Below, one piece after another: positions 1,016 through 52,992 of a stretch of DNA of 64,000 bases. Each line of letters opens with the position of its first letter. Position 1 is the first letter of the stretch. Source of the stretch: Perna viridis (taxonomy: Eukaryota); the NCBI GenBank assembly GCA_037379345.1, contig CM074512.1, positions 39,308,001 through 39,372,000 of the forward strand, in the 5' to 3' direction. Made by a program: the position numbers and the translations under genes. The notes beneath the pieces were generated by a model that saw only the letters and a list, made by a program, of their open reading frames with translations, did no database searches and was not told the origin of the DNA.

Positions 1016-3162
1016 TCACAATTCGAACATTCCAAAAGAGCTACTGCTCCTAACAGGTCCAATGTCTCTCCGAAGGGGTGTTTTTAAAGCAACCTGGAGT
1101 TCGTCGCCTTTTTCCAAGAACTGCACTTTTTCGATGTAACTGACATGATTGAATTGATTGTTTGTTACTACACAAGTGATTTTGCTAGATTCAATCGCCC
1201 TGAATCCGTGTCCAGAGTTGCTGTGCATTAATGAATGGTGTACATTTCCGATGTCGGTAACTCCTTTTACATTCATATTGATTGACACACGATTATAGAT
1301 GAAATATACACCAGTTCTAAGTATAATAATCTTCTCTCCATTCACTTTTACCTCTGTGGTGTTCATTTTGACCTCATAGTTTTTCAGGCATTTTAATGTT
1401 TCTGAAAATACAAGATATTGAATTCTTCAAAAGCTCCTAATTACAGTGGCGGAACCAGAAAAGAGGAGGGGCAGCTCCAGACACATCCAACCATTTGGTA
1501 GTACTTCCCCCTTGTGTCCGCCTATCATGCTTCTAATTTTTTCTTCTTCTTTCTAGATTTTTTAATGTGACAAGGAATCGAAGTGAAGTCTTTCTTTTGT
1601 GAACAAAAACTGTCAGGGAAAGACTAATATACATCACAATACAAAATATTTCGTAGAGATTGTCTATCTTACTTATAATAATATCCCTGTCGGAAAGAAT
1701 ATGTACCCAGTAAAAACTGCTCAGACATGAACTTCATAAAGAAAAAAAATGGTTTTTTTTGCTGTTGATGTCGAAGGAATAGAAGAAAAAAGCCAAAATT
1801 TAGGTCGAAACATTCAACAGGTTACAAAATGAGACAGCAAAAATGCAAGGGGAAATGTTCAGATAACCATAATTGAAATACTTACGTTTTGAGCTGCATA
1901 CTGGTAGTTCAGCAGTTGGGGTCGTAAAATGAAATGCAACTAAAAGATGAGAAGAAACACAATGTTATCTACTACAACTAAAGCGTTTTCATAGATTTTC
2001 CTCATCTTCATTAGTATTTCTAGTTTGTTCGAATAAATTGAGGTTTGAAATCGAAACTGAATTATGCAAATATATACATAGTACATAAGGATTTGTTTCA
2101 ATTATCGATTGGTGTGAAAATTAAGTTAAGATTTATTCCTGTGTATATTAACTTTTATTATGAGAAAATTATGATCAAAATGACTGCATTTGGTTACTCT
2201 TTAAGTTGGAGAGTTATATATCTACCTTTTTTCTTTTCGTTGTGGCTTTTCGTCTGCATTTTCTGTTAAAAGAAAAAAATCATGTCGTTTAAAAAAACAA
2301 CATTGTAGTTATACATAAACGTTAACCAATTAAAAAAAACACTAAAACTGTGGACCGTCTGGTTTTACAAATATCTGAATAAAGAAGATAATCTTTTACT
2401 TACATACAAGTCATACATTCTATAGATTTAAGTGCTGACAGATTAAACCTTTTTGGCTACAGACCCATTTAAAATTTGGAATTTCCAAAAACAGTTCTTC
2501 TTACTTAATGAATATTACATTTAACGAGAGTACATATCTTTAGTTAATATAATTTAAGAGATACATTCCCATTGTAACATTATCTTTAGATAAATTACCT
2601 TAACGACTGACTCAATCATGTCCCCCATTGAACACATTTGCCCGACAACTTTATTGATTTTCTGTCCGTTCTTGTACACTGCTCCAAGTGTATCGTTGAT
2701 TATCTTACATTTTACCAGGTCAGCACCATCTTCCCGCAGTGCACCTTCCCCTGACGTCCTCCGATTGGGTTTTGGATGTTCCTGGAGTGGTTCATTTTTG
2801 GGAGTAGGAACCATAACCGAGATGCTCTCTTTTGGATGTGATTCAATGTCTTTGTCAGTTGAGATGTGGGGAATAATGAATACCATACAGGTTATCACTA
2901 CAACCAGTAGTATTGCATTGAGAATCAACATGACGGTGAAACTGATTTTAAGCTTATGATACGATAGAACGATGTCTTGATATTGTTTATTCATGTCTTG
3001 GTAAGGAGAGCTGATCAGACTTTCACACGTACTCTGACTTCTCATTCGTTGTCTACCAAAAGCACTTTCGACGTCTGGGGACTGGTTGTCCGCACAACTT
3101 TGACACATAGAAACTTGTGAAGTTTCTCCTAGTGTAAAGCCAATTTTACGATTCTGTTCCAT
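1016..3162 (-). CDS. TNF-superfamily ligand, divergent copy 1 (type II membrane protein, long cytoplasmic tail), ~346 aa
   Basis: Exons 3162-2599, 2262-2226 (37 nt), 1939-1886 and 1401-1016 all have GT-AG ends and join in frame (1041 nt). TM segment ISFTVMLILNAILLVVVITCMVFII, strand-A motif VAFHF, THD motifs GVYFIYNRV, LEKGDELQV and C-terminal FGMFEL. Confidence 0.9.
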
Positions 3163-5567
3163 TTTTACAATTTACATTTATAATTAGACAAAATACTTAT
3201 AGCCAGTTCAATCACACTTGGTTTATTTATGGGCTGTCCTTGTATGAACTGAATCAAACTAATAAATTCGTCTACTTAAAAAGTCAATTTTATCGCACCA
3301 ACTATTCTATTTTCATCTACAATTGAGGATCTTTCCGGTGGATAATCCTGAACCGAACAGTTCATTTATTAGATAATAGATTACGAAGTAAGAATAGATC
3401 CCCTTCCGTGTTGGACTGAAAACAGATAACAATAAGACACATTACACCAACATTTAAATTTCACATTAAAAATGACTGGCAGTCAGATGAAACCATAACC
3501 GAGTGCTCTAAAAAAAAAACCCCGAAACATCGACAACCAATTAAAAATGCGGGAACGTATCTGGAAACTTTTAATAGATATAAGTAGAATTACCACTGAT
3601 ATATTAGGTTAAGTCTATTTTCTGTCTGTCTGCTTGTTTATTTTTATTTAAAGAAACAATTTTTTTAAAGGTTATATTTTATGTTAAAACAATAAAAACA
3701 CTCAGAAAGTTCAATAATAAAGCAAATTCATTATTAAGCATTGCATTATGAACACACGAAAACAAAATTAAGATTTTTTCACATTTTTCTAGAGGAAAAA
3801 AATGGGGCCACATGTTAGCTCATTCATTAGAAATCTTTGGATCCGCCACTTGGATACCTTTGGAAATATGATTTGTAAAAAAACAAGATTTCATAGCAGA
3901 AAACGTCTCATCTTTTTACCATATCGGTCTACTTCCTTCAGGATCTAACATACACCTTTCAAATGTGCGCACTAGGCAAAGATGTGTATTAAATAAGCAA
4001 AGAATCTGTGCAGTCAATGCAGATGAACATATTGCTAGAAATCATTATGTATATAAAAATAGGAGATAGATATGAACTAATTTAAAACTTCATCAATTAG
4101 CTCATGCAAACGTTACATACATAATTTTGCTATTTGCAGATATTTAATTTCCGGTTTCTGGTACAGGGGTAACTTGAAAGCCTTTTTAACCATGCCGAAC
4201 TGTTTAATATTTTAATTTATTATACAAATAAATGCAAAGAACACAGCTCGATCAAGTCACTGATAAAACCGCAAATTCACCTGATAAAAATGTAAATATT
4301 ATGATTCAACAAGATGTAAACAAACATTTCAATTTCGAACATTTGCTATAAAGACTTACTTGCTAAAGGATAAAAAACATCTTTCAATCAATCACTACTG
4401 AAGAGTTATATTCGGAAATCGTCTCCAGGCGCGTCCGAACACTTTTGGATTCATCCGATGTTTGAATTTCCGGAAATTGGGATGACCTAACTGTTCAGTG
4501 CGTGCTCATTGTAAATGTACCTGACGCCAAGGACGTATCAGTATTTATCTACAGAGTAAAGGTTTAAATTTCATTTCAATTGAATTTGATCTGCTTTTAG
4601 GTTATATTAATTTTGTTATGCTTGAATTACTTAGGTGCAACGGAGTTACCTCTCTTTAAATATATACGCGGCATACGTATATATATACCATTTTTTCAAC
4701 CGATTGGTTAGCTTAAATAATAATAAAGGCATCTCCGTTTCATTTTTGCTAGAAATTAATCATGAATATTAGTTAGGGCTGACACATTCAGCACATTTAT
4801 TTACCTACATGAACGATTTAACTCCTTGTATCAACAAGCGCGAAATATTTGCCATCCCGGTTTCCTTCTAAATTTGCAGGCATTATTTTTTTATATTCTG
4901 TATTATTCTAAATTTAGTCTCTTTTACAGAAAATTAGTGTTTTACCTTTTCATATATGTCAAACTTTCCAAGGCCACCTAAATAATGCACCTAATTACAT
5001 TAATTTTAATGGTTGAAGTATTCTACTTTTAACTGCATGAATTTAATCAAACGTCAATAATTAGTTTCAGAATAAGTTTAGGAGTGAGAAAACTTTCTGA
5101 AATGATCAAAGATTTGTCTAGTGAAAAATAATTGATTCTCAAATATTTGACTTCTGTATTTTTTTTAATTTTTTTTTCTTAAGTATTCATTTTCTTATAA
5201 ACATTTATGTAAGTGAAGATTACACGATGTAAAGTGAAGAAAAATGTAGAAGTGATAGGATAATCAACAAAAACAAAATATACTTACTACAATGTCTATG
5301 CTTGGAGCGAGATGTGCATAAAAGGGGCTCTCTATTTCAACTTTTGAAATATTTCATCGGTTTTTCCTACAGCGTAATAATTTAATGTCAGTAATGACAG
5401 ATTTAATATGTAAAACGGAGTCTACGTGATGACACAATTGTAAATTCAAGTATATACAATGGTAAAGGTGAAATACAAAGTTGACAACAAAATATGTAAA
5501 TATTATCATCTAAATTCATATACGGGACACATGATACATTGTGATGATAATTTACCTAATCTCTGTT

Positions 5568-6017
5568 TTACCTAGAAACGATTGTCAAATTTCCCGTTTA
5601 TTGCTTTTACATTCAAGACATTTGAAAAGTGAGTTGTTCTTCTTATTTTCGTTGTAATTCAAACCAGTACCATGTGAGTGATACAAGATGGCCATGTAGG
5701 ATTTTATCACAAATGTTTAAAACAAAACACCGAATAAAAGCTGTCTTTAGACCTAGGTCTCCTCGTCTCTCGATCGTTATAACCAAGTAGTATTACCTAG
5801 AAACGATTGTCAAATTTCCCGTTTATTGCTTTTACATTCAAGACATTTGAAAAGTGAGTTGTTCTTCTTATTTTCGTTGTAATTCAAACCAGTACCATGT
5901 GAGTGATACAAGATGGCCATGTAGGATTTTATCACAAATGTTTAAAACAAAACACCGAATAAAAGCTGTCTTTAGACCTAGGTCTCCTCGTCTCTCGATC
6001 GTTATAACCAAGTAGTA
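5568..6017. repeat. Exact tandem duplication, 2 x 225 bp
   Basis: 5568-5792 and 5793-6017 both read ttacctagaaacgattgtc...aaccaagtagta; no mismatch seen by eye. Confidence 0.9.
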
Positions 6018-9000
6018 TGCGTGAAATCGATATTATTACGATTATAGACAGATTTTGGGGTTTCCGAAAGGCACCATTTATTTAAAGGTTGAAAGTCTAA
6101 AAATTACGATGTTTTCATCACAATATCCGCACATGGCTAGTGTATCCCACTCACCTTCTTTATGATAGTAAAACACTTCTGAACCCTCTATAAAATTAGA
6201 AATATGACCATAGAAAAGGAGAAAAAGATTAAAAAAAACTTACTGTATATACAAGTGTAATTATAATATCCAACTGTTTCTTATACACAAGAGTATGTTT
6301 TCAATTTAAAATGTATGCGCTTCCAACACAAACAAATTACATAACAACTAATATCGATTAAAGCATATCAAAATAACATGCATGCATCTCTATAGCATTA
6401 CATACAAAAAAGGTGATATTCTGGTTCATATGTAAGTACACTAAAAGCTTGTGTGACTGTTTACATCTAGTACAGTACTTGTAATATAACACAGACAAAG
6501 AAAACCACATATACAACAGAACGACCGAGAAATCATAAAAGATGATAAAAACAGTCATTGCACCAAGAAAACATTACAATCGTACAGTGAGTATCCTATT
6601 CTTGGCAGAGAAATTGACACACTGACATTGTCGTTATAATCTCTTTTATCAATACAACATCGTTCTTATGTTACTTGTGTTATCATAATGAGTGAAATGA
6701 TTTTAATTGAATAGATTTATAACTGGAATAGATTTCTATCCCATATTTATAAAATATTCAACTTATATCATTATTTTCAACACCTCATTGATAAGTGTCA
6801 GCTGTTTGTTATCTAAATAAGAGGTTAATTGACTGAAATCATTTATTTGTTAGTTTAAAATAGTTTTAAATTTAACACCTGAAGTGTTAGTCAGGAGGAG
6901 AAGGGTTGCTAACCTCGCGATAAGTACAATTTATATCATGTTGTATTATTGTATTCTTTTTCACGTATTTGTTAGAAGTACAGCCGCGATCCCCACTCAA
7001 GTTCAACACATTATACGTTGTTTTCCCTAGTTCAGTCAATGTGTTCCTTGCTTTAGTTACGGATCAAATGTTCCAACAAATACTAAGGACTATGCGTAAT
7101 AAAGAAAATACCTGATTCAAGGAGTGGAACATATGATAGCTTCGGCATGCTTTCACTTTAAGGTTTATTTTTGGTTCTAGTACATGTCATCCTTAAAGTT
7201 TGAAAATTTGTTATCCCAGTTATATTTGCTGTAACCTTTTTGCATTATGAACACCAGATCTGGCTCAAAACACGATAAAGATGTGATTCAAAATCGCCCA
7301 GAAATGTTACAAGCTCACGTAACCGTCTATGACTAGTTAGGCAGCCAATAGATCAGTTGGAGAATGAGGCGTTAGTCTACTATCTAAATAAACATAGACG
7401 GTCACATGGGAGCTTATAACATATATTTCACCGTTTAATAAGGATGTGACTTCAAGTGTTCTGATCATAACACCCTGATATGTGAACTGCAAAATTAGAC
7501 AAAAAGCATAACAAATACACAATTGTCAACTCGTGATGAAACATAGTAACTTTTTGAACACGCGAGCTTTTGCATGCATGGCAAAAATCGTATTTAACTA
7601 TATCAAGATTCGAGAATTACTTAAAAACTGAATAAAAGGAGAAACGTCGGGAAATCGCGGGACGCCTCTTATTAAAATGTTATAACTGTCATTTGTTAAT
7701 AAAATACATCAGAGGGCGAAGCTTAATACGACCGCTCAGGTCAAACCCTGAAAGGTTGGGAACAGTATGGACTAAGTGTAGAAATGAATGAAGGTGGTCT
7801 AAGAACGTCAAAGTTTTAAAAAGAAATATGAAAAAAGCAATTTATACAAAGTTGAAGAAATCGTTTATCTCTGATTCCTTTTGACCCCTAATTCCTATAA
7901 GTTAAGGACCATAACTCTTATATCTATCAAAACATTCTTTTTACTTGCACTTCAACCCACACAAATTAAAGCACAAACTACAAAAACAATTCACAAAACA
8001 AAATCCGCACACGAAAATTATAATGATAAAACAAACTAGCGAAAAGTTTAAAACAGTACGTAATTAATCACTTACTCACTTAATGAGCATGGGAGTATGG
8101 ATACATGTACGTTCAAGCTTCAATTTGTATGCAAGGACCAAGTGTAAATGAATTACGCTTCATGCTTATATAGACTCATGCCGTGCATTATCTATGTATT
8201 ATTTTAATATTAAGTCTAATTAATATCACTGACAGTAGTACTTTCTAAAATTGCAAAACTAATACATAACAGTCTACCTTTATTTACTTTGTGTAATGAA
8301 TAGCGATAGGTCGATGCTGAGAAAAAAATCGCTATAAAGAAAGAACCGTCAGAAACAATGCAGAGAAAATACATTCTACTCATTATTCTAGAGCAGTGTT
8401 TTTTAATAATGATATAGAATATAATGTTTTCTGATATGGTATAAATACGTGTAAATGGGTCAAGAAAGTTTCAAAAGTCGTTGCCATCGTCATATCAAGT
8501 GATTGAACAGAAATTAAGTTTTTTTGGGGGCAAAAGGGTGGAATTCTGGCGTAGACTGTCCATGTGAAAGTCCACCGTGTTTCGAGAAAGAAAAACAAAT
8601 AGGTATTAGGTATAGCTTTTAAGGATAAACTGATGTAGAAACAGAAATTGTAGTAAAATTGTAAAATTTCAATTTTTGGCACGCCTTGAATTGGCACTAC
8701 ATTTTTTTTTAAATGCTTCACGTAACTTAAAGATGATATTTACTGGGTCTATATACTGTACCTCTTGCTTGTAGTTATAGCTGATTTAATTAATTCGATT
8801 CCTACCCTTCAGTTAGCTTTGCACCAAATGACACAATAATTACACACAGGAACTACCCCCAGGCTACGCTAACCAGTAAGTACAGTAACTTCTCGTTTAC
8901 CTGTTTTAGTACTTTAGAAGTTAGTCTAAATACACGTAATTCATACTTACAGGAAACGGATGACACATACTGCGGTTGAACTAGCGGTTTTGATGTGGAT

Positions 9001-11201: not shown

Positions 11202-12938
11202 CTATAGCTTGAACATTCCAAAAGTTCCTTCGCTTACAGAGTCTTGCATTTTCACACCTTGTGGGTAGTTCAGTGCAACCTTAATTTGACTATCTTTTTC
11301 CAAGAACTGTATCTTCTCGATGTAACTGATGTGGCTCATCGTATTCTGAATTACTCCACATTTGATCATGTTTCTTTCAAGATCATTGAATCGTTGGCCA
11401 GTGTTACTATATCGTATCGAATGCGTAATTACTCCCATTTCAGGTAGTTTTGTGTTGAGTTCTGCATTAATTACTACGCGGCTGTATAAAAAGTAGGCAC
11501 CACTAGATGAAACCATTATTGATTCATCTTTGACACCGATGCTAGTTGTGTTCAGAGACACCTTCCAGTTCTTCAAACAATGTAAGGTTCCTAAAAAGCA
11601 TTAATAATAATCTGCATTAATTGATATTTACCTATTTATGGACCATTTTGCTGTTAATGTTGCTACCTGCTGTCAAAGTGCAGTGTGTATTAATCGTTTT
11701 ACATTCTTTGCATGAAAGAGTAATCAAGGGAACCAAGATTCTATTAGATATCAAACGAATGTAATCCAGGGATAAAAATCTTACACGGAAAACAGACACA
11801 CACAACAAAGAACATAAAATAACCAAAATAATCAAGTTATTTGACTAATTGTGATATAGTCCTACATCGATTATAGTCATTACAATGTATTTATGGTGTT
11901 AAAGGGTGTACATAAAATAACTCACTGCTGTCTTTACATCTTTCTGTATGTGTGTTGTTTGACACCAAATGGAAAGCTGAAGATTCTGAAATGAAATGAC
12001 AATTGGATAATGCTGGCGTACAAAGATCGTGGACTTAAATTTTTAACTTTAGATCTTTATATTTTTTATTAGTATTACATCTAATTTATTTGCATAAAAC
12101 AATTATGTTCAAAGAAATGAAAAGGTAAACTTAAATACGCGCAGGCTGGTCAGTCTTTTTTTACAAATGTTTTATAAGCGCGAGTTGGTATAGGAAGAGT
12201 TAAAACTTACGATTTGATTTTTCTTTTTTCATTGACTCCTCTATGTGCTACAAATACAACAATACATTTAGAAGATATTTCAATGAGTAAAAATTTCTTT
12301 TGTAAAGGCAAGTGAATACACAATTTATCTAACAAAATATTATTGCAAGAATGTAATTCTTAGTGTATTTAGATATATGGGCGGAGTAACAGCGACGTCC
12401 TATACATAGCCTAAAATCATATTAGTAAAACTGCAGAAACTTTTAAGTCATCTCTTAAAATAAAAACGTTTATCTATATTCTATTTGTATCATTACTTAC
12501 CTGCGTGAAAGAGTCGAGTAGATCTTCCATAGAGCATTCATCATTATCACCGACTTTATCGACCATCTGACCATTCTTGTAAAGTCTGTGTAATTTCTTT
12601 TGAATCATGAGGCATTTCACACGAGATGAACGTTCAGATGTCTGCTTGTCTGTCTGTGGTGAGTTTCTCCTTTCTTCTGTTATATTAGGCACAATGATGA
12701 TCAAACATATTGACACAACCACCAAAAGCAATGCGTTTAATACCAGCATACAAATGAACGTGAACCTCAGTTTCTTGTATTTCATAACTGCCTTTCCATA
12801 ACTTAGGTCAACTATTAGTGCTGCTGACGATTGTTTACGTTCCATTTCTGCAACTGAATAACCGTTACTATAACTACCTTTATGTTTCCCCATTTTGTAT
12901 CGATAATCAAAATTTTCCTTCAGCCGTGTTAACTTCAT
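11202..12938 (-). CDS. TNF-superfamily ligand, divergent copy 2, ~292-307 aa (ATG at 12893 or 12938)
   Basis: Exons 12938/12893-12501, 12247-12211 (37 nt), 11985-11926 and 11590-11202 join in frame with GT-AG ends. TM FTFICMLVLNALLLVVVSICLIIIV, SAFHLV, GAYFLYSRV, FGMFKL. Confidence 0.9.
11713..11830 (-). mobile_element. Fragment of the 3' non-coding part of the Penelope-like element, in intron 3 of TNF copy 2
   Basis: Diverged reverse complement of ~30535-30650 (aatcaagggaaccaag...gaatgtaatccaggga...caaagaacataaa). Confidence 0.6.
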
Positions 12939-14710
12939 CAACTGTGATACTAAGATGCCTGACCTGTTTTCAAAGTTTTAAATGAATAGAAAAACATTTC
13001 ATTTACATATTGTAATGGGGTTATATAATAGCTCTCCGTAGGTGTTCTTTTCCCAGACAAAAAACAGAAAAAGAAGGATAGTACTTTAAATCTTAAAATA
13101 GATCCAAGAAACATAACATACCTTCTCAAAGAGTCAAAAATACAAGTCTTTTATATATTTATCTCTTTTTACAGTACTATCCTATAGTACAACCATGCGT
13201 GATTATTGTCGAGGACAGTAAATAATTTTTTTTTAAATTTATCTCTCAAATTCTTTTACCCAAATTTACATCGAAATCTTCATAGCAGACCGTTTGATAA
13301 AAGTGAAAATTATTCCATACTTCTTTCCGATTCATCATCAATTAAATGTGATAGTATAGTTGTTGTTTCTGTCTATTTTGCCAGAATGACCGGCTAGTAC
13401 CACTAACTACACATCTTAAAATCGCTGCGCGTATAGTAATGAGTTATGGAAGACATTTTATGTTTATTTTTTTAAACCTGATTTGAGTTAAACTGTGTCA
13501 AGATATATCGATATTAGATAGTTAATAAAAAATGATAATAATGAAATTAATTTCTAAATGGTCAAATAGTTAAAAACTAACAAAAGGAAACTACTAAAAC
13601 TTTACCTTTACATATGACTAACAAAAAAACCAACATTACAATTATTACTAAAGTCTGGTGTATATTTGAAACAAGAAGTATTCAACGATAATTTTGCTCG
13701 TAAATTCCTCATTGTTCGAAAACGAATGATTTGCTGAATCGAAAATTTTTCATATAAAGTTCTACGTATATATATACTTACAAATCTCTACATTTCCCTT
13801 AATATTTATGTACAGCCTGTTGAGTCTATTTTTAGATCCCAGTAATACCTGTAAATATACAAACGTAACTTCCACAATGATTGGGAATTTTCAATTAATA
13901 TGAAAGACTTGGGGAGAGCTAGGAGAAAAGAAGTAACAAGAATTCCAAGATCCTGAACTATTATTAATATTTTGTTTTTAGGTTATTCAAAGTATTATGA
14001 GACTTTTTAATTGACAACAGTTATAAATGCCATTCTATCATCATAAGAATTTGAAAGATCTTGAGTTATTGTATTTTATTTTAGGCTAATTGAAATCATT
14101 AATGCATTCCAAAAATAGTTATTATGATTCAGGTAATTTCCAACCCATGACATGAGCGTAAAATAAAAAATGTCACAAGGTTTAATCGACATCCAATAAT
14201 CTGAACTAAGTTAGTATAAGAAAACAAGTACTATCTTTAAAATTTGATCTTTTAACTTATAATTTTCTACAATTCATTTAGGAAAATAGCACGTGGCACG
14301 TAATTTTAATTTTCCGTAGAGTTTTTCGAACGCAGCTAAGTTATCAGTATTTGACCAATCAGGAAACAGAACTGTGATCAAGTGACTTGCGTTTCCATGG
14401 AAGAGCGTCTTGAAGGCCAAAGGGTAAAAAGCGAAACTATACCGACTGCGTCGGAAAAAAGCTGAAAACGAATACAGAAGTAACAAATAACCAATAACTA
14501 GTGTCAGTGTACTCTCTTCTCTTTCTACACTTTGAATTATTATAAGGTGGTGAATAAGTGTTGAGTACCCAAACCATCTATTGGAGTCTAAGGCTATTAA
14601 ATTAAATGTAAACAGTGAATTCATTGAGAATAAAAAAAAATGTATTATTACCCAATAACAATGCTCTGAAAGTTTCCATATTATATTTAAACAAATGAAG
14701 TTTTGAGTTC

Positions 14711-17185: not shown

Positions 17186-17224
17186 TGTTGTTGTTGTTGT
17201 TGTTGTTGTTGTGTGTGTGTGTGT
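17186..17224. repeat. Compound (GTT)n(GT)n microsatellite
   Basis: Read directly from the sequence. Confidence 0.9.
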
Positions 17225-18918: not shown

Positions 18919-20826
18919 TTATAACTCAAACATTCCGAATGAGCTGCTACTTTCCACTGATACAATTTGTGGGCTATGAGGAGTTTTTATAGCTATTTTA
19001 AGCTCACTTTTCTTTTGTAAATGAACAACTTTCTCAATATAACTTACATGGGTAAATTTGTTTTTGTTCATATTGCAGGCTATTCTACTTGACTCCAGAT
19101 CTTTAAAATTATTTCTTGTATCACTAAACCGCAATGAATGGTCTATGTCTCCGAGAGAAGCCTCTTCAGTCGCCTTTACATGTATTGTAACTCGATTGAA
19201 AATGAAATAAACACCTTCTTTCGGTACTATAATACCCTCGTCACTAACATCGATATCAGTTGTGTTCATATTTACCTGCCAGTTTTTTAGACATTTCAGT
19301 CGTCCTGTGGAAAGAAACGTTAAGATTTAGATACATAGAACTGAAAGCAGTCAAAGGATATTTTGTCATACTAGTATATGTGTAAAAATTATACAAAAAG
19401 ACGTAATGTGTGCTTTAAGACAGTGATGTGTGTCATTTGTTTGAGTTCTCCTGAAAATGTTTGTATTCTTGTTATAATAAATGTAAAAGAACTTCCAAGT
19501 GTGTGATGATATCCCTCTTTTCAAGCAACAAGTTAATTGGCGTTTCAATGTTAAAAATAATGAACGTTTGGACAATTGTCAAATATCTGTAGGTTTATTT
19601 TTAAATAGTATTGCATAAGTTCATATGTTCCATATTTTGTAAAACTTACTCGAATCTTTATTGCATGTCGTTAGGACAGCGTTTGGTATGGTAAAATGAA
19701 AAACAGCTGAAAATTGAGGAAAAAAATCTGCAATAAAACTAGGTATACCCTTTACCAAAGCACTCTGATTTTAGTTTAAATTGTATATTCCAGTATAATT
19801 CTATAGATTGATTGGTATTTTACAAGAAATATTGATAGTTTAGGAACAGATATTGTATACATTTACGATCATACTAAGTGTCTTTACTAGGAATAGATTG
19901 ATTGATTGATTGTTGGGGTTTAACGTCCGAGTAGATAAAACTAGATACAATATTCTTGAATGCATCGATTTTTAAAGGGACTTACCTTTCTTGGTTGTGT
20001 TCATATGCGACATCTTGTTATGCTGAAATATTTTTTAAAAAGTGTTGAATACGTTTTTTTTTTTTCGGAAATAAAAAAAGTCAAACGTTCATGTCGCAAA
20101 ATTATACTTATGATGATTAGTATATATTTGAAATATACATATGTTAAATATAAGAATTTTAAAACTGTTTTTGTAGGTATTGCTTATACTTATGAATTTG
20201 TATTCTGATGTATCTGAATTTTACCTTTTTGACGCTTCGGTATTTTGCTGATATTTTATAATGCAATATTTTCTTTAAATGATTACCTGTACAATTGATT
20301 CCAGCAAATCAACGGCACTACACCCTCTTCCTTGTGCTACTGTGTCGGCTTTTTGACCATTGATGTACACTGCCCCTAGCTTACGCTGCAGTATTTCGCA
20401 CTGTATCAAGTGATCTCTAGAGGAAGTTACTACTCCCAAGCCCCGTGGTGTTTTTTGGTTAGAAGATGAGGCAGGTTTAGTTGTCGACCGCAGAAAATCG
20501 TTGCCGTCTTGTGAATTATCACTTGAAAAAAGGTGTGGAATAATAAAAGCTAGACATGTTGTCATTGAAACCAATAAAATACCGTTCAGTATGACAACAA
20601 CAATAAAGCTTATTTTCATTTTATGATAGGATAAAACTATATCTGAGTACTTCATCTGCAAATCCTGAAGTTGTATTGGACCAAGTAAACTTTCTGATAC
20701 ACTTTGTTTTGTCATTCTCCTCCCACCCAGACATAACTGGAAGTCATCGACTTCTTCGCCACAACTTGTGCACACAGAAGCTTGTGATGATTCTGATATT
20801 GTTCTAAATTTTGGTTTTGATCCCAT
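18919..20826 (-). CDS. TNF-superfamily ligand, divergent copy 3 (long cytoplasmic tail, closest to copy 1), ~339 aa
   Basis: Exons 20826-20287, 20022-19986 (37 nt), 19706-19650 and 19304-18919 join in frame (1020 nt). TM ISFIVVVILNGILLVSMTTCLAFII, AVFHF, GVYFIFNRV, FGMFEL. Confidence 0.9.
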
Positions 20827-21371: not shown

Positions 21372-24300
21372 TTACCTTTATAAAAATATTAAATAGATTG
21401 TCAAAAATCTTTGATAAGTGTAAACACACATTTCAGTAAGCTCTACTAGAAGACGATGTACAAAGCCATAAATAATTTCAAAATGGCAGTAAAGTGTAAG
21501 TGAAATTATTTGTCATGTCGGTTTCTGTAAAAATATATACTTACGTTTGCAGAAACAACCTCCACAAGAAACATATAACATTAAAAAATCCTTATTGTGT
21601 TTTACAATCCGTGAATCGTATTTTGTATCTTGTATACTAAATTATCTGTATTGCATACTTCGGACGTAGATATATATATAGATATAGATATAGATATATT
21701 TATCACTCAAGTGGATATAGGTAAAATGATATAGTCTCATTTACAAATTGATCTAGCATTGAGTTTTTACTATTTGTTTTATGATCTTACGAAAACAATC
21801 GTGTTCATTTGAAAAAAAAAGAAAATACGTTCATGTGTTATTCAATACAAAAACAAATTATGCTTAATGCGTCGAATTTATTTTCTCAAGTACAGTTTTA
21901 ATGAAAACATGGTGTAGGTTAAATAAAACTCTTCCAAATAATTCAATTCACTATCGGACTTCAATGCACAAATGCCGAAACGTGTCAGGACTTAAAATTG
22001 TATTTATGTATTATTCATGTAGTATTTAAGTTTATGAACAAACGGGTATTCTGGTTTCTCTTTTATAGCAGGTGTGACGCTACGCATTATTATTCTGTTA
22101 CTCGATTACTTTTTAAGAGTAATTAAGTGTTATAAGCATCATTTTAATTATCGTTGTTGTGGCACATTAGTGTAGACGGAAACTTATATAATTCATTGTG
22201 TACGCTGAGCTATGAAACATCGAGTTGCTCAAGAAATCTCACGTCCAGGGTAGGTAAAAAGGTGAAGATATGGCATGGAGAACAAAACTGTTCTGATGGT
22301 GCATATGGTTAACGACCGTAAATCTTGTTAGATATTGTTTGCATGGTGGCTTCCTACGGAGAGTGGGGTAAATATTTATATGATACATGCAGCATGTACT
22401 AGAGCTAGACTATCAAAAACACATTTATCTGAGTTTCATGTCATTTGCTTTAAGTATGCACTCAGTTTTACATCAATAAATTAATTACTTTTGTTATATC
22501 TATGTGGAAATTAACACAATGAAATATTCAAAGATTGGATTAATTAAGACGTTTACAAATGTCACTATCTGGGATTAAATAAAGTTCGTTTTGTTTTTGC
22601 CTTCACCATTTATGTTCTATTTTAAACAGTAAAATCCGCTTTGTCTCTCCTTTAAAGAAAAACTTAAAAGAAAAGTTTACAAAAAAATTTTCTTTATTAT
22701 TCCATGCATTGAAAAATGGCAAAGCCACACGAAACATAACATAGGTCAGCCATCACTGCTTAACCACGTTTGCCCCTTCTACATGAAGCCACTCTTAAAA
22801 CGTAAAATCAGTCCTTCCAATGGTAGGCGAGATGGTTGCGACAAAATTTGGTGGATGGACGGAAATTAGGAAAAGCGACAGGGTGATTCAAATTTCCACA
22901 CCAATTGTCGAGTTTGGGTATAGTTAAACAAAAAGCACACTTGAAAAACCAGAAAATCATGTCAAACCAAATAAATGTTTTGATACAAATAGTTCAAAGA
23001 TCATTGCATAATTACTGTATTTTGTGATCTCATTTTAGCATACAAATGACGAAACACCTTATAAATTAAACGTCCTAAGGAAGTAATCAGCATTTAATTT
23101 TAAAATATGCAAAACAAAAGAATATTGGTTCTCCTGTGCAGGAAATGATGCAGCTAATTTTACTTTTGAGACTTATTACTGTTGGATGAAAAACATGTAT
23201 CTTTTTTTAAAGGGTTTTCTCCAAATAGTACAATTTATAGGGAGACACGGTAACTTTCTTTTTACTATCAATAAAAATAATTTGTTTACTTAGTCTTGGA
23301 AAACAACTGTATGTAGTTCGGTTTACTTAAGATTATAAATACAAATCTTTTTTAAAGACATAACTATTCGACTATCATTCTATTACAACTCATTCATTCC
23401 AAAAGTTTATGTCGTCACTGTAGATTTCATATTAATATAGCGACGAGATACAATGTTTTCTTAAGCCAAGTACCTCCTTCCAAGTATAGTATCTTTTCAA
23501 GATAGCTTACATATAAAAATGGTAAATGTGATACGACTACCAATAAAATATCCACCAAAAATTAAGCAACGAACATTTGAACTTCTACAAGTCACAACTC
23601 GGTATTCAATGATAAGGCAAAACTCATACTATACGGCAAGCTGTAAAAGGCCCCAAATAAATCAAGTGAAACTTTTCATAAAAGACGAAATTTGACCATA
23701 ACTATAAAAAACGTAAATAAATGGTTAAATAAATAAAAAACAGCCACTGTATGCTCCTGGCTTGGGACAGTCATATAAAATGTGTGGTGGGGTTAAACAT
23801 GTTTATGATCGCTTATCTCTCCCATTGGACAGTGTTTGGGAAACAAAGCAATAAAATTAACAATAAATACCTGTTGAATTCGGATTTAACTCTTGAGATC
23901 AATACAGAATTCAAACACTTTAACAAATAGGAAAAAAGACAATAATCTGCATCTACTTCGCAAAATCCAAAAGCAACTAATAACCACGCCTTACTTACTC
24001 AAACAAAACCATCAATGTAAACCCGTCCAATCGGATTTAGTGAAAATAAAACAAAACACAAGATAAAAGGCAATGACATTCACATGCATATAAACATTAT
24101 AATGTTGATGGGATTCGTTAATCTTGAACTTTGTAAAAGAGCTATTAAACGCCATCGGCATACTAGTACATGGAATAAAGTACCTTATTGAAGAACCGAA
24201 CCTATTATTTCAATTAATTCAATGACTTGTCAACTGTATATTATATTCAAGCCTGACTTTGAATAAATTACTTCCTCTGTAATGGTAATAAGTAGTGATG

Positions 24301-34187: not shown

Positions 34188-37100
34188 TCATATCTGAAAC
34201 ATTCCAAAACTTCCCATAATCATTACTGGTTTCATGTCTACGTTTTGAGGAAGATCTAATGTAATCTTGATTTGGCCACCTTTTTCGAGGTATACAATCT
34301 TCTCGAGATAGCTTACAAGACTTATCAAGTTTACAATTGATTTGAACTTGATTGTGTTGGCTTTCAATGTTAATGTAATGAAGGGCCAGTGTTGCTCTAT
34401 CTCACATCATGTGATATAACGTCGACTTTTACTTCAGTCGAGTTTACATGCGCGTTAAATTCCATACGACTATACAAGTAGTAATGCCCAGTCGATGGGA
34501 CAATGATAGTTCCATCTTGGACCACAATTGCTGTTGTGTTAAAGTTTAATTCCCAGTGGCTAAGACACTCTAACGATCCTGGTAATAATAGAACATTTAT
34601 AATTTGATGAAAGCGCAGCTGTTCATCATATACAACTATCATTATTAAAACTTCCATCATAAAAGATTAATTCTATTGGATGAAATATAGTCACGTGACA
34701 TAGATTAATTAGAATATTTTTTTTTTGTTTTAATCGCAAGAAAGGTTGAATAACCCCCAAAATCCATGCCATCATTGAATAACCCCGCTTCAGAAATTAA
34801 AATTATAGAAAAATATGCCATCCATCGATCGGCGGTCTCATCTCTATGAACATCTAGTTTTGTAATGCTTGTAGGTTATCTCCCATAATAATAATTACGT
34901 CATTGTCGCCTGCACATAGTTATGGCGTCCAGCAAGTACCACGGTCGAATATTTAGATTCTCGTCCGGCAGAAAAGGACGCACTGAACACGAAAAGGGCT
35001 ACAAAAGCAGCACTACAATGTTTTTCCCAGTTTCTCTTCTCTATTGACCGGGAATTGAGATTTGAAACATCAGAATCGTTATATAAGGTGTTGGAAATAT
35101 AATATGGCGCTGTCAGGAAAAAGGAAGGTTCATTCTACAAACGGTCAGCTTTGAAAGAGTATACGATTTGGGCTGTCCAGGCGTTATCGGAAGGAAATGG
35201 ACTTTGACATTATTAAGGATGCCCTAGCACATTTGAAACCACGCTTTTTTTGTCCTTTGTTTGTTTGGTATGATAAAACAATTACGCCACTCTAATTCGG
35301 TAAATATCTAAAACTGTCAACCTCACTAAGGTTATTCCCCGCTGGCTAAAGCCCTCAGGGAAATAACCCAAGTTCGGGTTGACACTTTTGGATAGTCACC
35401 TCCTCAGATGGCCATAATTGTATACTGTAACTTGAACAATTCCATGGTGGCAAAATGGAATATAATTATGCATGTTATATTTTATGTGTAGTTTCTAAGC
35501 TATCAAACTGTTCATTTTAGTAATAAAATGCGATTCAAATATACATTTACAAAATTTTGACTGACGTACAAGGTAAATATGTTAAGGTATTAGAAACACA
35601 TTGTGCATGTTTTAAATCTGATGGCCCTGTACCGTTAGCAGTCTCACTTTGAAATGTTTGTCTAATCTTTTCCCAAATTTAGATCAGAACGCATAAAATT
35701 GAAGAATTAGTAAATCATATTATACCCAGGCCTGTATAATTACGGCCTTCTCTGCATCCTTCAGTGAATACACTGTCAGATGTTAGGTGAAAAGCTGAGG
35801 ATCCTGTGCGAAAGAAAGTTTTTTTTGTTACAAATTTGATTGATTTATTGATTGATTGATATCTATATACCCATCCATTCATCCATTTAAGTTCGAAAAT
35901 ATGTTTTAAATCAAACATTTCCTATTATGCACTAGTCGTACATGCTGAATCGGCGCTAGCTCTCAGAATGAACAGCCCACAGGGAGGTTAGACACCTGAC
36001 TCCGATACATTTCTGTACATACGTCAATCTGTCTTACATATGCGACGTGCTTGACAGAAAATCAGTGAATACTAATTATGAAGTTTTGGCTGGGGATCGA
36101 ATTTACGACGTCTCCCAACCACAGAAATCATGCCAACACGTACCAGATCACTAAAGTAATCCATTTGCTATAAAGATTTCTTTAGATTAAAATAAATTTT
36201 AAATAAGAATAGATATGGAAGTTATAAAATATACACACTTCCTAGGAAATACGAACAAATAAATCTGAATTTAACTTAAAGCTGCATTACCTGCCAAATT
36301 TGTTTAGTTTTGATTTTGCTGAATTGTACTGATTAAATGAAATAAGCTTGTAGTAATGCAATTGAAATACCAGCAGAATATTGTGAAACCACTTTTTTTA
36401 ATCAGAGAAGATCGATAGCCCTGATCTAATTAGTTTTCGCCATTATTTGCAAAGATTGCCGACAGGACATACACCTGGTTTAAAAATACCTTTCTCTTGG
36501 TAAAAAAAATAACAATAACGGATACACAGGTAAGCACATGTGTTGTTTTCATTTCACTTCATCTATTTCTTGATTAGTTTTCAAACAAATAATGACAATA
36601 TTTGAGCCATATCATATCACAACACATAAAGTTTTAAAGGATCCTAGCGTTATATTCGAACTTTTTTCTTTTACGGCTTGAGTCTATCGATCTTCCTTGC
36701 CGCTGAATAACCACTTTCGCTTTGCAATCAGATTTGTTATTAAAGAAGCGACCTTTACAACACATGCACGGATTAAGGTCACCAGAAGTCACATACATAC
36801 GCATTTATATAGGTCAATGTTTTGTCTTGCAAGAAACATATTTAATGTATTTAAGACATTTTATTTGTGGATATCAAATGAATTTATACAGGAAAAGTAC
36901 AATTTAGTAGAAATAATTCAAAATTAAGGTATATTTCAACAGACGCAAAAATTTACGAAAATGACAGCTAATGCAGCTTTAAATAGTAATAATAGTAATA
37001 AGCGAATCATCATAACAAACATTTTTATTTGCTTAACAGTTGATTTGATGTCCAACACACTTGTATACTGAGGTAAACTTGTTACCAGTCTGATCTTAAA

Positions 37101-38015
37101 AGACACAATATTCCTATAATATTTGTGACTTACGTTTCAATTTCTGTCTTTTCTAAATACTGATGTAATAAAAATGAATGACGATAGAATCTACATTGCA
37201 GGATTCTCCAATTATTTGTTTTATGGTTAGAAAGACACAACCAGCGTACGAGTACTAAGATAAACACAACTTTCATTATATTTCCGAAATCTATCTACAC
37301 AAAGTGTTTGCTTCTAAAGCAGAGAATTATAAAATCAACAATTCTAGTATAAATCTGCAGGTTTTCAGTGTTGGTAGTTTTCTGTTCAATTGTGCATTTT
37401 TGTTTATTACAGGTGTAGGTTATTGCCAAAATGCTTAACAAACGATACAAATACTAATAGCTATAGTGAGTTAATGAATTCTGAAATTTACTAAATAGGG
37501 CTTGTGCTTATTTATTGTGTGCAACATTGTTTATCATTTTATATGTATTTTGTCCTATACTGTTTCATATGAAGCTGCTAAATGAAAAAAATTCAAGAAT
37601 TTTAAATAATGGTATAACAAAACACCAAACTCGTTCGGGCCTCTAAAAAGTATATGGGAGTAAATGGGAAACCGGATATGAAAATACTTGAAGTTCAAAT
37701 GTACAAAAGTATTTTTATCTAAATACAGTACATAAAGTGTACTTTAATCTTTATATTATTGACCACTTGTCCATTTCTGTAAAGTTGGTGTAGCTTTTCT
37801 TTTATAGAATAGCACTGAATATCTGGATAATTAAAGCCATCTTGTGTTGATTTGATCTCCGAAGGATTTACTTCTGACATATTTGGTAGAATCATACCCA
37901 TGGAAATAATCACTACTAGTAAGAGTATTGCATTCAAAACCAGCATACACAGACAACTGAATTTTAGATTATCATGTTTCATGAGCAAATTCCTCTTCAG
38001 TGATTTTGATTCCAT
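34188..38015 (-). pseudogene. TNF-superfamily ligand pseudogene (copy 5, paralogue of copies 4 and 6)
   Basis: Exon 1 runs from 38015 but loses homology after NGQVVNNIK (no second stalk Cys, no homologous donor). Exon 2 (37167-37134) has its acceptor changed AG>AT and an in-frame TAG. Exon 3 (35803-35744) is intact. Exon 4 (34578-34188) has TAG at 34397-34399 and two +1 insertions (391 vs 389 nt), then ends FGMFQI*. Confidence 0.9.
36280..36978. mobile_element. Non-autonomous DNA transposon with TTAA target-site duplication (Kolobok-type MITE) in intron 2 of the pseudogene
   Basis: TTAA (36276-36279) + agctgcattacctgcca ... tgacagctaatgcagct + TTAA (36979-36982): 17-bp TIR with 2 mismatches. 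AG...CT ends with a TTAA TSD fit Kolobok rather than piggyBac (CC ends). Confidence 0.8.
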
Positions 38016-39920
38016 CTCCCTCCTATGGTATCTGGAAATTCTGTTTGATCTTGTGTATAAATTGCTGTTATTGACTTAGTATCAAATTCATGTACATTAT
38101 GTAAGCATTTCGTAAATTAATATGGTTTATGTGTTCAATCTTGTTCCTATGCATGATAGAAGAAATTTCGTATATATTTTTTTTTTTTTTTGATAAATTA
38201 CTACAAGCAGTTTTATTATTTGACCTATTATATTTCCTGTTAATAATTAAGAAAACAATATTTAAGAATATTAACAATATAAAGCATTATTTTCATCTAT
38301 AATTATGAACAATGTTTCTCGACTGTTTTGTCCCATTTGTACTATTTTATTGTATAAAATTTTGATTTGGTAACAAATCTGAATCTGAATTAGAATATAT
38401 TGACCAACTGAAACTTACTAAAACTCCATTACCATAATTATGATTGATTGTGAAGTATTAAAACTATTTTACTTCAAAGCAGGTAACAGCAGCAAAGGTC
38501 TAATTTGTAGGTCTACTAGTATTCAATTGAAAATATTAAATATATAGATCGTGATGAACGGTCTACATATTTTTTAAAATTTTGAATTTTTTCCTTTGTT
38601 CAGTCTGTCAGAGACACATTCGACAAATGATCTAGACAATATGGTTTACCAGGCCGATGCGTTTCTACAGACATTCTGAATACTTTAGTTATTCCCGCCG
38701 TTTTGCATTCTGCTAAATTGCGTTATGATATGCCAATATATATTCGTTTTGGTAAAATAAAACATACAGAATTTTTCTGTCATTTAAAACGTATAACAAG
38801 TTCAATTGAGTCCTTATTAAAGGAGCATCAAAAGAATGTAACTATATATTTTGTTAATACATATGTATGCTGTCATGCATTTTTCTCAGACAAAATAGGG
38901 ACATCCTCGTAGAAACAATTGGGTTAATGAATTTTTGCTTGAAAACTAAAACTCGCAATGCAATTTTGTTCACCAACAGTCCCTCTTGCATGGAAATCAT
39001 TCAAGGTAATACTCATGTCAAAATTGATTTCTAGTAAATTGATTTACAGATAAAACTTTATCATAATTTCAAACTCTGAATGTTTGTTGACAAAATATGT
39101 ATTTCTGTATCAATTTGACCGGTGTCCATGAAAGAAGATTCCTGTTAAAGGTTTGATCTACTTTAATTTATGTAGATTAAATCGGTTATTAGTAATGATT
39201 TAACATGTATTAAAACAGTGGTAATACAGACTTATTTATCGATAAGAAACGACTTTCACTTTCACACTTTTAAAAGAATTCTGATCAATTCGTCTGAGAG
39301 AGGTATATTAATGCCATGAGACACCGACAATATACATAATTGTAATTTGTAGGCATTGTCATTTTACCAATCGAGCTTAAAATATACCGGTATATACAGT
39401 AAGACAGAGGTTAATATCACGATCTTTTTCATTGCCATTGATATTATATTAATGCACAAATCAATCTGATAATAAAAGATCGTCGTATGTTTGAAAATAA
39501 TAAGATGTCCTTTCCAGCATGAAATGAACATACGATTATCTTTAATTAAAACAAGTGTTGTTGTTCTATTCAAGATTATTGGAAGAAAAAGCAAGACCAA
39601 ACTTCTAATAACATTATTTTATTTGTTATTTTTTCTACAATTTAGTAGTATGTCATTCCGATACTTTTTTTAATCGTTGGTCAATACGATCCTCCGTCTT
39701 TTTTTTATCTTTTGATCATTTTAAGTTTGAAATGAGACTGAGCGTCATGGCAAAACTATACAAATATGTATTAACTAAACAATCAAATATACTAATTGGA
39801 AACTAACTACTGTTGAAAAAAAAAAACAATAATCGACTGTTTTGAGACTGGTCTATGAAATATCAGTATGGCCAAATGTCAATATCCAATAATAGTCGGA
39901 AGATACTAAATGTTAAGAAA

Positions 39921-49746: not shown

Positions 49747-52700
49747 CTACAATTTTGCAAGGCCAAAGAAAGTTGTTCGGCGGTCCCTTGAAACGAGATC
49801 GATATTTGACACCTGGACATATAAATTATCACCAGCATTGAGTTTAAAAACACCGGAAGTATGGCTCGTGTAGTCGCCATACAGCTTATTTTCTGCCCAA
49901 CACTGGGTGCGTACACTTTTTAAGAGCATTTCCGTTCCGTCATTTGGATATTTTATATTCCATCGATAAACATAGTGATAGAGAGTTTGTGAAATGTTCG
50001 TATTCGCATGTCCTTTGTACAGATTGGTAAACAAAATTTGGCTGTAAATATGGTAGCTACCCGAACTAGTTATTATCATACGACTATTTTTTACCTCTAC
50101 TCCAGTAGCATGTGCAAGATCACCATCTCTTATCCAGTTCTTCAACGTATAGGGGGTTTCACCTGAAAGAAGAATAGTGATGTTACATAAAACGTCGGTT
50201 ACAATTTAAATTTATTTAAATCAGACCTTAAAACAGAATTAAAAACATAACTAATGCTGAATTTGTATCTCATGCCAGTTATTCGAAAGTCAAGATGAGA
50301 CCGACAAAAAACTCAAAATAGGTATCTCTTGCTATCTATTGTATTCAAAATCTTCATCCGTGTTGAAGCTGCTAATTAATTAATAATCAAACTAATAAGT
50401 GCAAAATGACATTATATATGTTTTTAAATACACAAAATGTGGTAAAGTTGGAGTTGCGAATACAAAATATAAACTTTGTAATTGCACATGTAAACAGAAG
50501 AATGTAAAAGGTCGGGTTCTCATATATCATTAGAATTTGTGTAAACTACATATATTATGTATAAGTGCTTCTTATTTTTCTATTGTAGTGTCAATATCAT
50601 TGTTCTTTTTTTTTTTCCAAAGTTGAAAACACTGTATAATGTAACATTACATGAAATTTCAAAACCGCTTCGAAAAGTTAAGAACATACAAAAGTGTGAC
50701 TGTTTGGAGGACATGTTGATATTAATTTACCAACACGTTTTAAAGCGGGTTATATTCTTTCTCTTCAAAAAAAAAATTCACAGTTTCAGATAGTTCTGTA
50801 AGAAGTATAAAACCGAGAGCGCAAACGTAATGAAGTCTGTAAACAAAACATTACGGGGAACAACAAAAGAACAACAGTTGAAGAACAAAGCGCACGTAGA
50901 CACAGAAAAAGAACAGCACGAACCCAATTTATGATTTTGGGTTTGTGCAGGGGAAAATGAGCAGTTTCGCTTCCTAGTCTCCCGCAAACATGTTATTCGT
51001 GAAAATATCATATTCGTGTATAAATATATGATAAAAAATGCTTGAATTAAATCAGGTGGTAATATTAGGTATTCTAGCAACCATCAATGATGATGGATTG
51101 TTATTTGAAATGTATCAAAATTTGAAAGTCCATGTAAAGCACGTAAATCGTGTTTAAATGAACTCACCGTTTGATCTATTCTGTAATCCAGCGACCAAAT
51201 GAGCAGCAACACGGGGACCAGTGTTCTGTGTGTCGCCAGAGTTACCATTTGTCGAATTGCACGTACATCCTAGAAATGAATTGATAGAAAATGCATCGTT
51301 ATATTTATGTAATCAATTCCCTTTATGTGTGTACGAGGATGCTCCTCACAGCTGAATAACTGAAATAAAATGTAATACTGATGATACCTAAGCAATAAGA
51401 TTTATCATGAAATGAAAGCTAACCTTAGACATAATTGAAATAGTTCATAATAAGACAAAGGTGGTTCAGGTAATTTAAATACTGATAATTCTCTTCATTT
51501 AATTGGCCGATCAATTTTTTGCGAATCCGAATATTTAAATGAAGGCCTGTTTAGAAATTTGATTTACCTTCTGCTTGGTAAAGTTTCTCTCTTCGTTTAA
51601 ACAACTACAAAATAATATATCAAATTAAGAAATTATATACGTATAGCTAGTTAAACGAACCAGGCACGATTTGATTCACTAAAGGAAATTCAGAAATCTT
51701 ACTGCCGTATCTTAAGCTTTGTACGATGGCAAAAAAAGATGACAAAGAATGCATTAATTTATAATTAAAACGGAAAATACATTTTTTCAGCAAATCATTG
51801 TTGTAATGGACTTATTCTTTCTTATTTTGAATAGAGTTCTGAAACTCTTAAACAACCGTCAGATCACGTGGTATCATCCTTGCAACAGATCAGAGTTTTA
51901 AGTTAAAATAAAAAAAAACAAATATTCTTGTTTTAAGCAAGTTAATACAAATGTGAAGACTCGCAAAACATGTATGTGTATGCCCTGGTAGTGTAAACTT
52001 AGATTACAACAATTTAAAAGCTAGACACAATATTTATATTTGGACCATCGTTTTATTCCAAATTGCGTCAATGATTATTGTTAGAACATACAACGTATAT
52101 TCAGATCTGTATTAATATCCAGTTATCAAAACAAGAATTGCCAAGCGTACAAAATGAGTTGTTAATGACTCAATATATAACAAATACAAGTCTGCAAGTT
52201 GTCAATTTGTCTTAAAGCCACGATCTGAACGCTTTCAAATTGAGAATAAACTGGAATGATCAAGCATTTTTATAATTGTATAAAGTCGTTCATTTATCTA
52301 CACTTTTTACAAACATGACTATCGTCCTTTGTAGGACTCCGACGGTATCATATTAATAAACATATCTTATTAATTCTTTTTGTGAAATAACTTACCAGAT
52401 TCATTAAAATTGAATTCTGGGTCTCCCCTTTTGCACAACATATTGTCTCCCCTTTCTCTGTTGTATGAATAAGTAACTTTAGGTCCAAGTTATCTTCCTC
52501 CAAAGGCCCTAGACGAAGGTCATTGCAGGGTAAGCAGAATGTATTAGAAGTATGCCGTTGATGTTCTTTTTCCTTATCAAGCTCTTTCTTCAAAGAATTC
52601 ACTCGAATAAATGATGCTATCGACAGAGCTATCGGAATACAGTAAATAAGGAATGATACAATAATAATTATCATTTTGAATATGTTAGGTTTCTTCTCTT

Positions 52701-52992
52701 TGGTGGATGGAAGGAAACCGACGTTACTTCCTGAAGATCCAGATGGATTACTACAGTTACTTTCATTTGTTTTTATACTACCTGTACCACTGGCAGAGCT
52801 GTCTTCAGATTTCGTCCTTAAACTTATTTGATGATATTCACTTGCTAAACTTGTTAGATTGCTTCCCATTTTATCAGTTTCTTCTCCTGGATAAACAAAC
52901 ACATTAGAAAATTGGTTTGCATAAAATTTTCCAGAGGTGTTATGTTCGACACTTCCGTTCACTGCTAAGTTATATGATATAGGTCTTTCCAT
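49747..52992 (-). CDS. TNFSF10: TRAIL/TNFSF10-like TNF-superfamily ligand (copy 7), ~383 aa
   Basis: Exons 52992-52396, 51604-51568 (37 nt), 51269-51168 and 50162-49747 join in frame (1152 nt). TM IIIIVSFLIYCIPIALSIASFI. GPRVAAHL, GSYHIYSQI, YHYVYR, LLKSVRTQCWAENKLYGDYT, GVFKLNAGDNLYVQVSN and TFFGLAKL parallel TRAIL motifs (RVAAHI, LLMKSARNSCWSKDAEYGLYS). The symbol means '-like'; orthology is not shown. Confidence 0.92.

Follow-up and report, generated by a model that had tools for sequence, protein, structure and literature searches.

How did a group of strongly divergent TNF ligand genes come to stand beside a conserved TRAIL-like ligand gene in the mussel Perna viridis? The genes lie in a 64,000-nt window of this genome, to whose positions all coordinates given here refer unless another contig is named, and they occupy the span 1016-52992 on the minus strand. 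The original prediction, made from the letters alone, had described seven same-strand genes in this span with intron phases 0-1-1, and had taken the six downstream ones for duplicates of the TRAIL-like gene at the upstream end. The genes themselves are present as described: the array comprises six intact genes (g1-g4, g6 and g7), the broken gene g5 and, in addition, the relic of one more TNF homology domain (THD). Their descent appears to be a different one. Very probably, the array consists of mytilid type II TNF ligands, the divergent genes being a fast-diverged mussel-family branch of a pteriomorphian TNF lineage that evolved by birth and death. We propose that g7 is a conserved TRAIL/RANKL/FasL-like ligand at the upstream end of the array, and that the divergent subfamily would have split long ago into three types, namely g1/g3 with an intracellular tail of about 75 residues and a CxxC motif, g2, and the short-tailed g4/g5/g6, a type so far seen in Perna viridis only; birth and death would then have shaped the array.

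Gene content and expression of the array

Among the open reading frames (ORFs) listed for the window, seven on the minus strand resemble first exons and six, on the same strand, last exons. All six last-exon frames pass the Pfam TNF model PF00229 at its 23-bit cut-off (g7, 90.8 bits; g6, 41.7; g4, 41.4; g3, 33.2; g1, 29.9; g2, 27.1) and so bear out the assignment to the TNF family, while Pfam searches with the seven first exons returned sub-threshold noise only. Gene models were obtained by enumerating AG/GT-bounded exons in the right phases and were checked against transcript-derived orthologues. The six intact models have four exons, canonical GT/AG sites, phases 0-1-1, an exon 2 of 37 nt and frames of 270-383 codons. 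These spliced models served for alignment, trees and dN/dS, and the searches and fold steps were run with single exons or database orthologues.

The TRAIL-like gene g7 (49747-52992; exons 52992-52396, 51604-51568, 51269-51168 and 50162-49747) encodes 383 residues and is supported by Pfam, PDB matches and the model. Downstream of it lie the intact divergent genes: g6 (39921-43414; exons 43414-43088, 41897-41861, 40930-40871 and 40309-39921; 270 residues; Pfam, spliced contigs and model), g4 (27690-29920; exons 29920-29597, 28950-28914, 28524-28459 and 28078-27690; 271 residues; Pfam and model), g3 (18919-20826; exons 20826-20287, 20022-19986, 19706-19650 and 19304-18919; 339 residues; Pfam and model), g2 (11202-12941; first ATG at 12938, exons 12938-12501, 12247-12211, 11985-11926 and 11590-11202; about 307 residues; Pfam and an orthologous transcript) and g1 (1016-3162; exons 3162-2599, 2262-2226, 1939-1886 and 1401-1016; 346 residues; Pfam, model and a transcript orthologue), with long cytoplasmic tails in g1 and g3. 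The motif signature that had been read from the divergent genes is real but looser than originally written, with variable residues at several positions: LNA[IL]LL or LNGILL, [LV]Y[KRI]NGQ, [AV]F[HQ], CLK[NE][WY], S[ND][TS][GR] and FGMF. A profile built from five divergent THD exons matches the 723-Mb assembly in this window only (five intact copies, one broken and one relic); Pfam TNF gives 16 exon matches genome-wide.

The one clear pseudogene of the original prediction is g5 (34191-38015; exon 1, 38015 to about 37743; exon 2 remnant, 37159-37134; exon 3, 35803-35744; exon 4, 34585-34191), a gene of the g4/g6 type with four kinds of lesion. Its broken THD exon was found by tblastn of the last exons against the window. 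Exon 1 has lost its last ~50 nt and with them the second stalk Cys and the donor site, exon 2 is reduced to 26 nt as against 37 in the intact genes, and exon 4 carries a TAG where the paralogues have Tyr, followed by a frameshift. P0008, a database fragment, corresponds to this truncated ORF, and no transcript contigs of g5 exon 1 were found in four runs. An eighth, decayed THD exon of the g4/g6 type (23451-24431; pieces 24425-24290 and 23537-23451) was recognized by tblastn and a profile match. It retains about 45 and 29 codons, with ~0.75 kb inserted between the pieces; in tblastn its first piece (~24425-24246) is 48% identical to g4 and has internal stops, and the profile match contains two stops. 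No exon 1 counterpart of this relic was found.

Expression is most directly seen for g6. About 20 sequencing runs match 37700-43500, many of them with 0.21-0.29 of the words, the share expected from the g6 exons and untranslated regions. In four runs (X1, X3, X4 and X12), which come from four studies and bear two organism labels, one contig of 689-731 nt per run joins 43088 to 41897, 41861 to 40930 and 40871 to 40309 with GT..AG ends on the minus strand, so that the g6 joints are exact in all four; the contigs extend the mRNA 5' to at least 43500 and 3' to about 39292. The joins of g1 and g2 are backed by transcripts of related mussels. Contig L006, which encodes P0044, aligns to all four exons of g2 with 73-85% nucleotide identity, the THDs of g2 and P0044 being 76% identical, and the 342-residue transcript product P0051 is 71% identical to g1 from end to end, across all exon joins. 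Contigs L019 and L020, which hold the THD ORFs of g3 and g4, were rejected as expression evidence: they come from the same species and are unspliced and colinear with the genome, hence genomic DNA that gives no evidence of expression of these two genes.

Two introns of g6 show features of their own. Intron 2 contains a very high-copy repeat (41192-41773): in each of the four runs RNA-type contigs accumulate on it, their depths summing to thousands, with numerous variants, inverted joints and loose ends. It is probably a transcribed element resembling short interspersed elements or miniature inverted-repeat transposable elements (SINE/MITE-like). A 104-residue ORF within it (41485-41799) has no Pfam match. 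Intron 3 (40407-40817) is represented by unspliced contigs at a depth of 2-4 in two runs, and among the joints listed none uses an alternative exon 3.

Descent of the divergent genes

Do the divergent genes descend from g7, as their position suggested? An IQ-TREE phylogeny, in which the window models were combined with ten further TNF exons of the genome and with database matches (44 THDs in all), unites the five intact divergent copies and their mussel orthologues in one clade (100/99) on a long stem of 1.27. Within this clade g4 and g6 together are sister to the g2 type (99/92), and g1 and g3 fall outside that group along with P0006 and P0037, transcript proteins of 334-340 residues; g3 goes together with g1 and with 340-residue proteins of Mytilus. 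The whole subfamily is nested in a 24-row clade (93/96) with Saccostrea (oyster), Pinctada (pearl oyster) and Tegillarca (ark shell) proteins, a clade that includes none of the other TNFs of the Perna viridis genome. Elsewhere in the tree, g7 pairs with L007, a TNF gene at C2:28.8 Mb, 10.5 Mb away (99/93*). Forcing the six, g7 and L007 into one clade costs 20.1 log-likelihood units, with p = 0.0385 in the approximately unbiased (AU) test. The claim that the six are duplicates of their TRAIL-like neighbour is thus not upheld.

The full-length alignment agrees with the tree. Mussel, oyster, pearl-oyster and ark-shell proteins have in common a juxtamembrane SY.KLK motif, two stalk Cys residues and a CS.EDL..S motif that ends exon 1; an LY[KR]NGQ insert, an additional pair of Cys residues about the exon 3/4 junction and an NTT sequon are mussel-specific. 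Monophyly and the shared motifs indicate that the subfamily belongs to one pteriomorphian TNF lineage with the Saccostrea proteins XP_061171352 and XP_062598012, KAK3096293 of Pinctada and KAJ8310342 of Tegillarca.

That the six are nevertheless local duplicates of g7, made in the mussel lineage and then strongly remodelled, is in our judgement improbable. Their same-strand adjacency, which is kept in M. edulis, would fit such an origin, as would the four-exon, 0-1-1 architecture with a 37-nt exon 2 that they share with g7. The L007 gene, however, has the same architecture 10.5 Mb off; this architecture is hence an ancestral one and no sign that g7 was the founder. (An initial match of g7 exon 2 in the L007 region, at 6443-6478 of the joined L023+L025, was dropped for lack of splice sites; a spliced 37-nt candidate at 4715-4751 was taken instead.) A Cys aligned to the axial Cys of TRAIL is likewise common to g7 and g1-g3, but the stalk motifs of the six match the oyster genes and not g7, and the THDs of the divergent genes are only 24-30% identical to that of g7. 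Finally, none of the relatives in Saccostrea, Pinctada and Tegillarca was found to have a TRAIL-like neighbour within 10 kb, on flanks too short to exclude wider synteny, so that the pairing could be mussel-specific; against this stand the two tree placements and the AU result given above.

The distribution of relatives is in line with a mussel-family branch. Searched against 1.84 billion representative proteins, the subfamily profile gives seven matches below 1e-30, all of them mussel-like and derived from transcript-sized contigs or Perna viridis fragments; the four oyster, pearl-oyster and ark-shell proteins named above are among the weaker matches, XP_061171352 under the name 'TNFSF6-like'. 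Word-based searches found g2-type orthologues in M. edulis and M. galloprovincialis ('THD domain-containing' or hypothetical; 60-67% identity) and, at 47-50% identity, g1/g3-type orthologues in M. coruscus, where the name given is 'TNFSF6', and in M. edulis, M. galloprovincialis and M. trossulus, where Mytilus members are also entered as uncharacterized; the split between g1 and g3 is not seen in Mytilus. Lineage specificity, as originally proposed, therefore holds in the sense that the subfamily is restricted to mussels, but it is not private to this genome. Nor is it undescribed in the sense of unannotated, given the annotated Mytilus orthologues, one of which bears the TNFSF6 name; the papers searched contained no characterisation of these orthologues, and none dealt with the mussel subfamily.

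One M. edulis contig carries, on one strand and in this order, a g7-like THD exon (60% identical), a g2-like gene and a g1/g3-like gene. The two lineages were therefore already neighbours before Perna viridis and Mytilus diverged. In this stretch, the interval from the g7-like to the g2-like gene shows no gene of the g4/g5/g6 type.

Further observations concern individual relatives. In P0040 (M. galloprovincialis, 376 residues) the end of exon 1 is repeated, with the CSMEDL..DSF.Q motif occurring twice about 60 residues apart, which points to duplication of part of the exon or to read-through in the annotation of that genome. In Saccostrea echinata (JAVQLB010000008, our L018; 1379-4633 and 10001-11299) both relatives of the subfamily, one P0012-like and the other P0013, form a same-strand tandem pair about 5 kb apart, and a protein search with P0013 returned uncharacterised oyster proteins only. 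Among characterised proteins, the pearl-oyster PmTNF (PMC12367993) was weighed as a possible member of the sister lineage; it has 249 residues as against 352 in the Pinctada relative, and no link was made.

Predicted form of the ligands and constraint on the copies

All models contain one hydrophobic segment of 21 residues (mean hydropathy 2.5-3.2) within residues 23-128, and an N-terminal signal-like segment is absent. Judged from these features, all are type II membrane proteins with an N-terminal tail, a single transmembrane (TM) segment, a stalk and a THD. As had been predicted, the divergent copies differ in their intracellular tails, which range over 22-76 residues (22-25 in g4/g6, 61 in g2 and 74-76 in g1/g3), and in their putative release sites; the tail of g7, with its TM segment at residues 108-128, measures 107 residues. 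The cytoplasmic tails of g1 (3162-2955), g3 (20826-20620), P0051, P0006 and P0037 contain a Ser-rich stretch followed by CxxC. Since this stretch is conserved among the five, the tail of the g1/g3 type appears to be under constraint, and it may serve in signalling or metal binding.

The THD of g7 finds TRAIL as its best match in the PDB (E = 7.6e-18), followed closely by RANKL (1e-14) and FasL (4e-14). Its QCW motif places a Cys opposite that of SCW in TRAIL, a residue which we take from established structural work on TRAIL to be the axial zinc ligand. In the joint alignment, g1-g3 share a Cys at this position with the Mytilus orthologues and with the relatives from oyster, pearl oyster and ark shell; g4 and g6 have Phe there. 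The original label 'TRAIL-like' is on these matches a fair description of g7, yet one-to-one orthology with TRAIL is not established, because RANKL and FasL score lower by no more than 10 bits, and g1-g3 and their oyster kin also have a Cys at this position.

For the divergent subfamily, the AlphaFold2 model is that of P0044, the full-length orthologue nearest to g2; it has a mean pLDDT of 80 and shows a long TM helix and a jelly roll, and in its stalk a confident helix-hairpin-helix unit across the two conserved Cys residues. Its top Foldseek matches are all TNF ligands (TNF-alpha, TL1A, RANKL, TRAIL and FasL; ~1e-9, E about 2e-9, TM-score to target 0.6-0.7), with no vertebrate member preferred. 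The model thus predicts a jelly-roll TNF fold for the subfamily, whose sequences also keep two motifs that typify the trimer core of TNF ligands, G.YF.Y..V and, at the C-terminus, FGMF.L. Each protein would accordingly combine one TM anchor and a small structured, Cys-bridged stalk with a jelly-roll THD, which would trimerise, engage TNFR-type receptors on mussel cells and signal in immunity, stress or apoptosis. At least eight loci with TNFR_c6 repeats occur in the Perna viridis genome, none of them near the cluster.

Directly before strand A of the THD, g4 and g6 carry the basic sites KSKR (g4, 28950-28914/28524) and RRKQKR (g6, 41897-41861/40930), both of which are completed across the exon 2/3 junction, where the phase-1 intron 2 splits the codon of the last Arg; g1-g3 are without such a site. 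As the dibasic site before the THD coincides with the replacement of the axial Cys by Phe, g4 and g6 would be the likeliest of the copies to be shed in soluble form, and their trimer chemistry would be altered. A bolder version of this idea, which we regard as doubtful, would make g4/g5/g6 a newly evolved secreted cytokine class, defined by the short tail, the dibasic convertase-type site across the exon 2/3 junction and the Cys-to-Phe exchange, that would act as a soluble, zinc-independent trimer with a receptor specificity unlike that of the membrane-bound g1-g3 type; the Cys-bridged helix-hairpin-helix stalk, as a Pteriomorphia-wide feature, would then represent a structured module not described before in TNF ligands of invertebrates.

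But are the divergent proteins still ligands of TNF receptors? Their head could have been co-opted, for instance for C1q-like pattern binding, or they could be non-signalling subunits that poison or modulate heterotrimers. The stem of 1.27 leading to the subfamily, the weak Pfam scores of 27-42 bits, the loss of the axial Cys in g4 and g6 and the presence of several co-located paralogues that could in principle co-assemble are all compatible with this. We think it quite unlikely nonetheless, since the trimer-core motifs are kept, type II anchoring and the stalk have been retained in common with the oyster kin, purifying selection extends across the THD and TNF ligands alone head the fold search.

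This selection is evident from the coding sequences. Between g4 and g6, whose THDs are 79% identical, dS is 0.51 and omega 0.32 overall and 0.25 in the THD, and in all other paralogue pairs synonymous sites are saturated (proportion of synonymous differences, pS, at least 0.78). Against the orthologues, pS is 0.78 for g2 and P0044 and 0.72 for g1 and P0051, with nonsynonymous proportions (pN) of 0.15 and 0.16, respectively. DNA similarity among the duplicates is confined to exons of g4, g5 and g6 and absent from introns and spacers, so that duplication breakpoints are unmappable. By these measures the copies are old and constrained and not a burst of recent, rapidly diversifying duplicates. 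Saturated paralogues, the younger pair g4/g6, one pseudogene and one relic together argue for the birth-and-death evolution that had been proposed.

Several points weigh against the descent and function that we propose for the array. The AU p value is marginal, and the group tested was named after the tree was seen. The 93/96 node is not starred, and the tree, with several long branches, derives from about 146 columns. The fold prediction concerns the orthologue P0044 and not a protein of the window, and a g4/g6-type orthologue from another species is absent from the databases searched. Expression evidence from Perna viridis itself covers g6 only, and no full-length g1-g4 products of this species were present in the protein collection searched. 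That most of the seemingly intact divergent copies are therefore silent and decaying, leaving only g7 and perhaps g6 functional, is even so very unlikely: the pseudogene and the relic show that copies die here, but the frames of the others are open over 270-346 codons with intact splice sites, pN against the orthologues is low at saturated synonymous sites, and orthologues are transcribed in related mussels.

The surroundings of the array hold a few further features. Upstream of g7 and on the same strand lie exons of a filamin-repeat gene (57995-63922; Pfam PF00630 matches on four ORFs), within which 61513-61827 and 61821-62177 form a direct repeat with 84% identity. Long (TA)n-type microsatellites at ~55090-55130 and 57450-57560 read YIYIYI in ORF translations. 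One of the 16 exons matched genome-wide by Pfam TNF, which is outside the subfamily and has a very long tree branch (3.3), lies on the opposite strand 75 kb past the end of the window (G000:C2:39447502-39447819, plus strand).

Comparison with known TNF ligands and clusters

Like TRAIL (TNFSF10), g7 combines type II form with a C-terminal THD and a Cys at the axial zinc-binding position. It differs in its 107-residue tail and in a four-Cys stalk motif that is absent from the PDB constructs. The divergent six match TRAIL at E of about 0.8 only, and LT-alpha and FasL weakly.

EDA, APRIL, BAFF and TWEAK are TNF ligands that are released by furin. As in these, K/R-x-K-R directly precedes strand A of the THD in g4 and g6 and forms a putative release site, which g1-g3 lack. 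Since Lys and not Arg occupies P4, it is not a classical furin site.

Mytilus possesses TNF proteins orthologous to the g2 and g1/g3 types, and in M. edulis these have the same order beside a g7-like gene. Perna viridis differs from it in the g4/g5/g6-type genes, none of which occurs in the interval between the g7-like and g2-like genes of M. edulis.

The array is a clean and fully resolved example of bivalve cytokine diversification, in which two deep lineages adjoin and old paralogues under purifying selection stand next to a younger pair, a pseudogene and a relic. It also corrects the view of the divergent genes as offspring of g7 and supplies mussel immunology with exon-level models of five unstudied TNF ligands as candidates for ligand-receptor pairing, g4 and g6 being marked as the copies most likely to be shed.

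In kind, the cluster is an ordinary bivalve immune-gene expansion and no new kind of system. Up to 27 TNFSF paralogues have been reported in one mollusc (2026 preprint, 10.1101/2024.07.27.603686), and in the Pacific oyster Crassostrea gigas, where the TNF and TNFR families are expanded, TNF genes occur in tandem pairs and triplets (Zhang et al. 2015, PMC4346834). The mussel array resembles these oyster clusters in its tandem arrangement, its lineage-specific expansion and its divergent paralogues. Different from them, it is larger, with six intact genes, one pseudogene and one relic, and it brings two deep TNF lineages next to each other, of which the divergent one is mussel-specific and set on a long stem.

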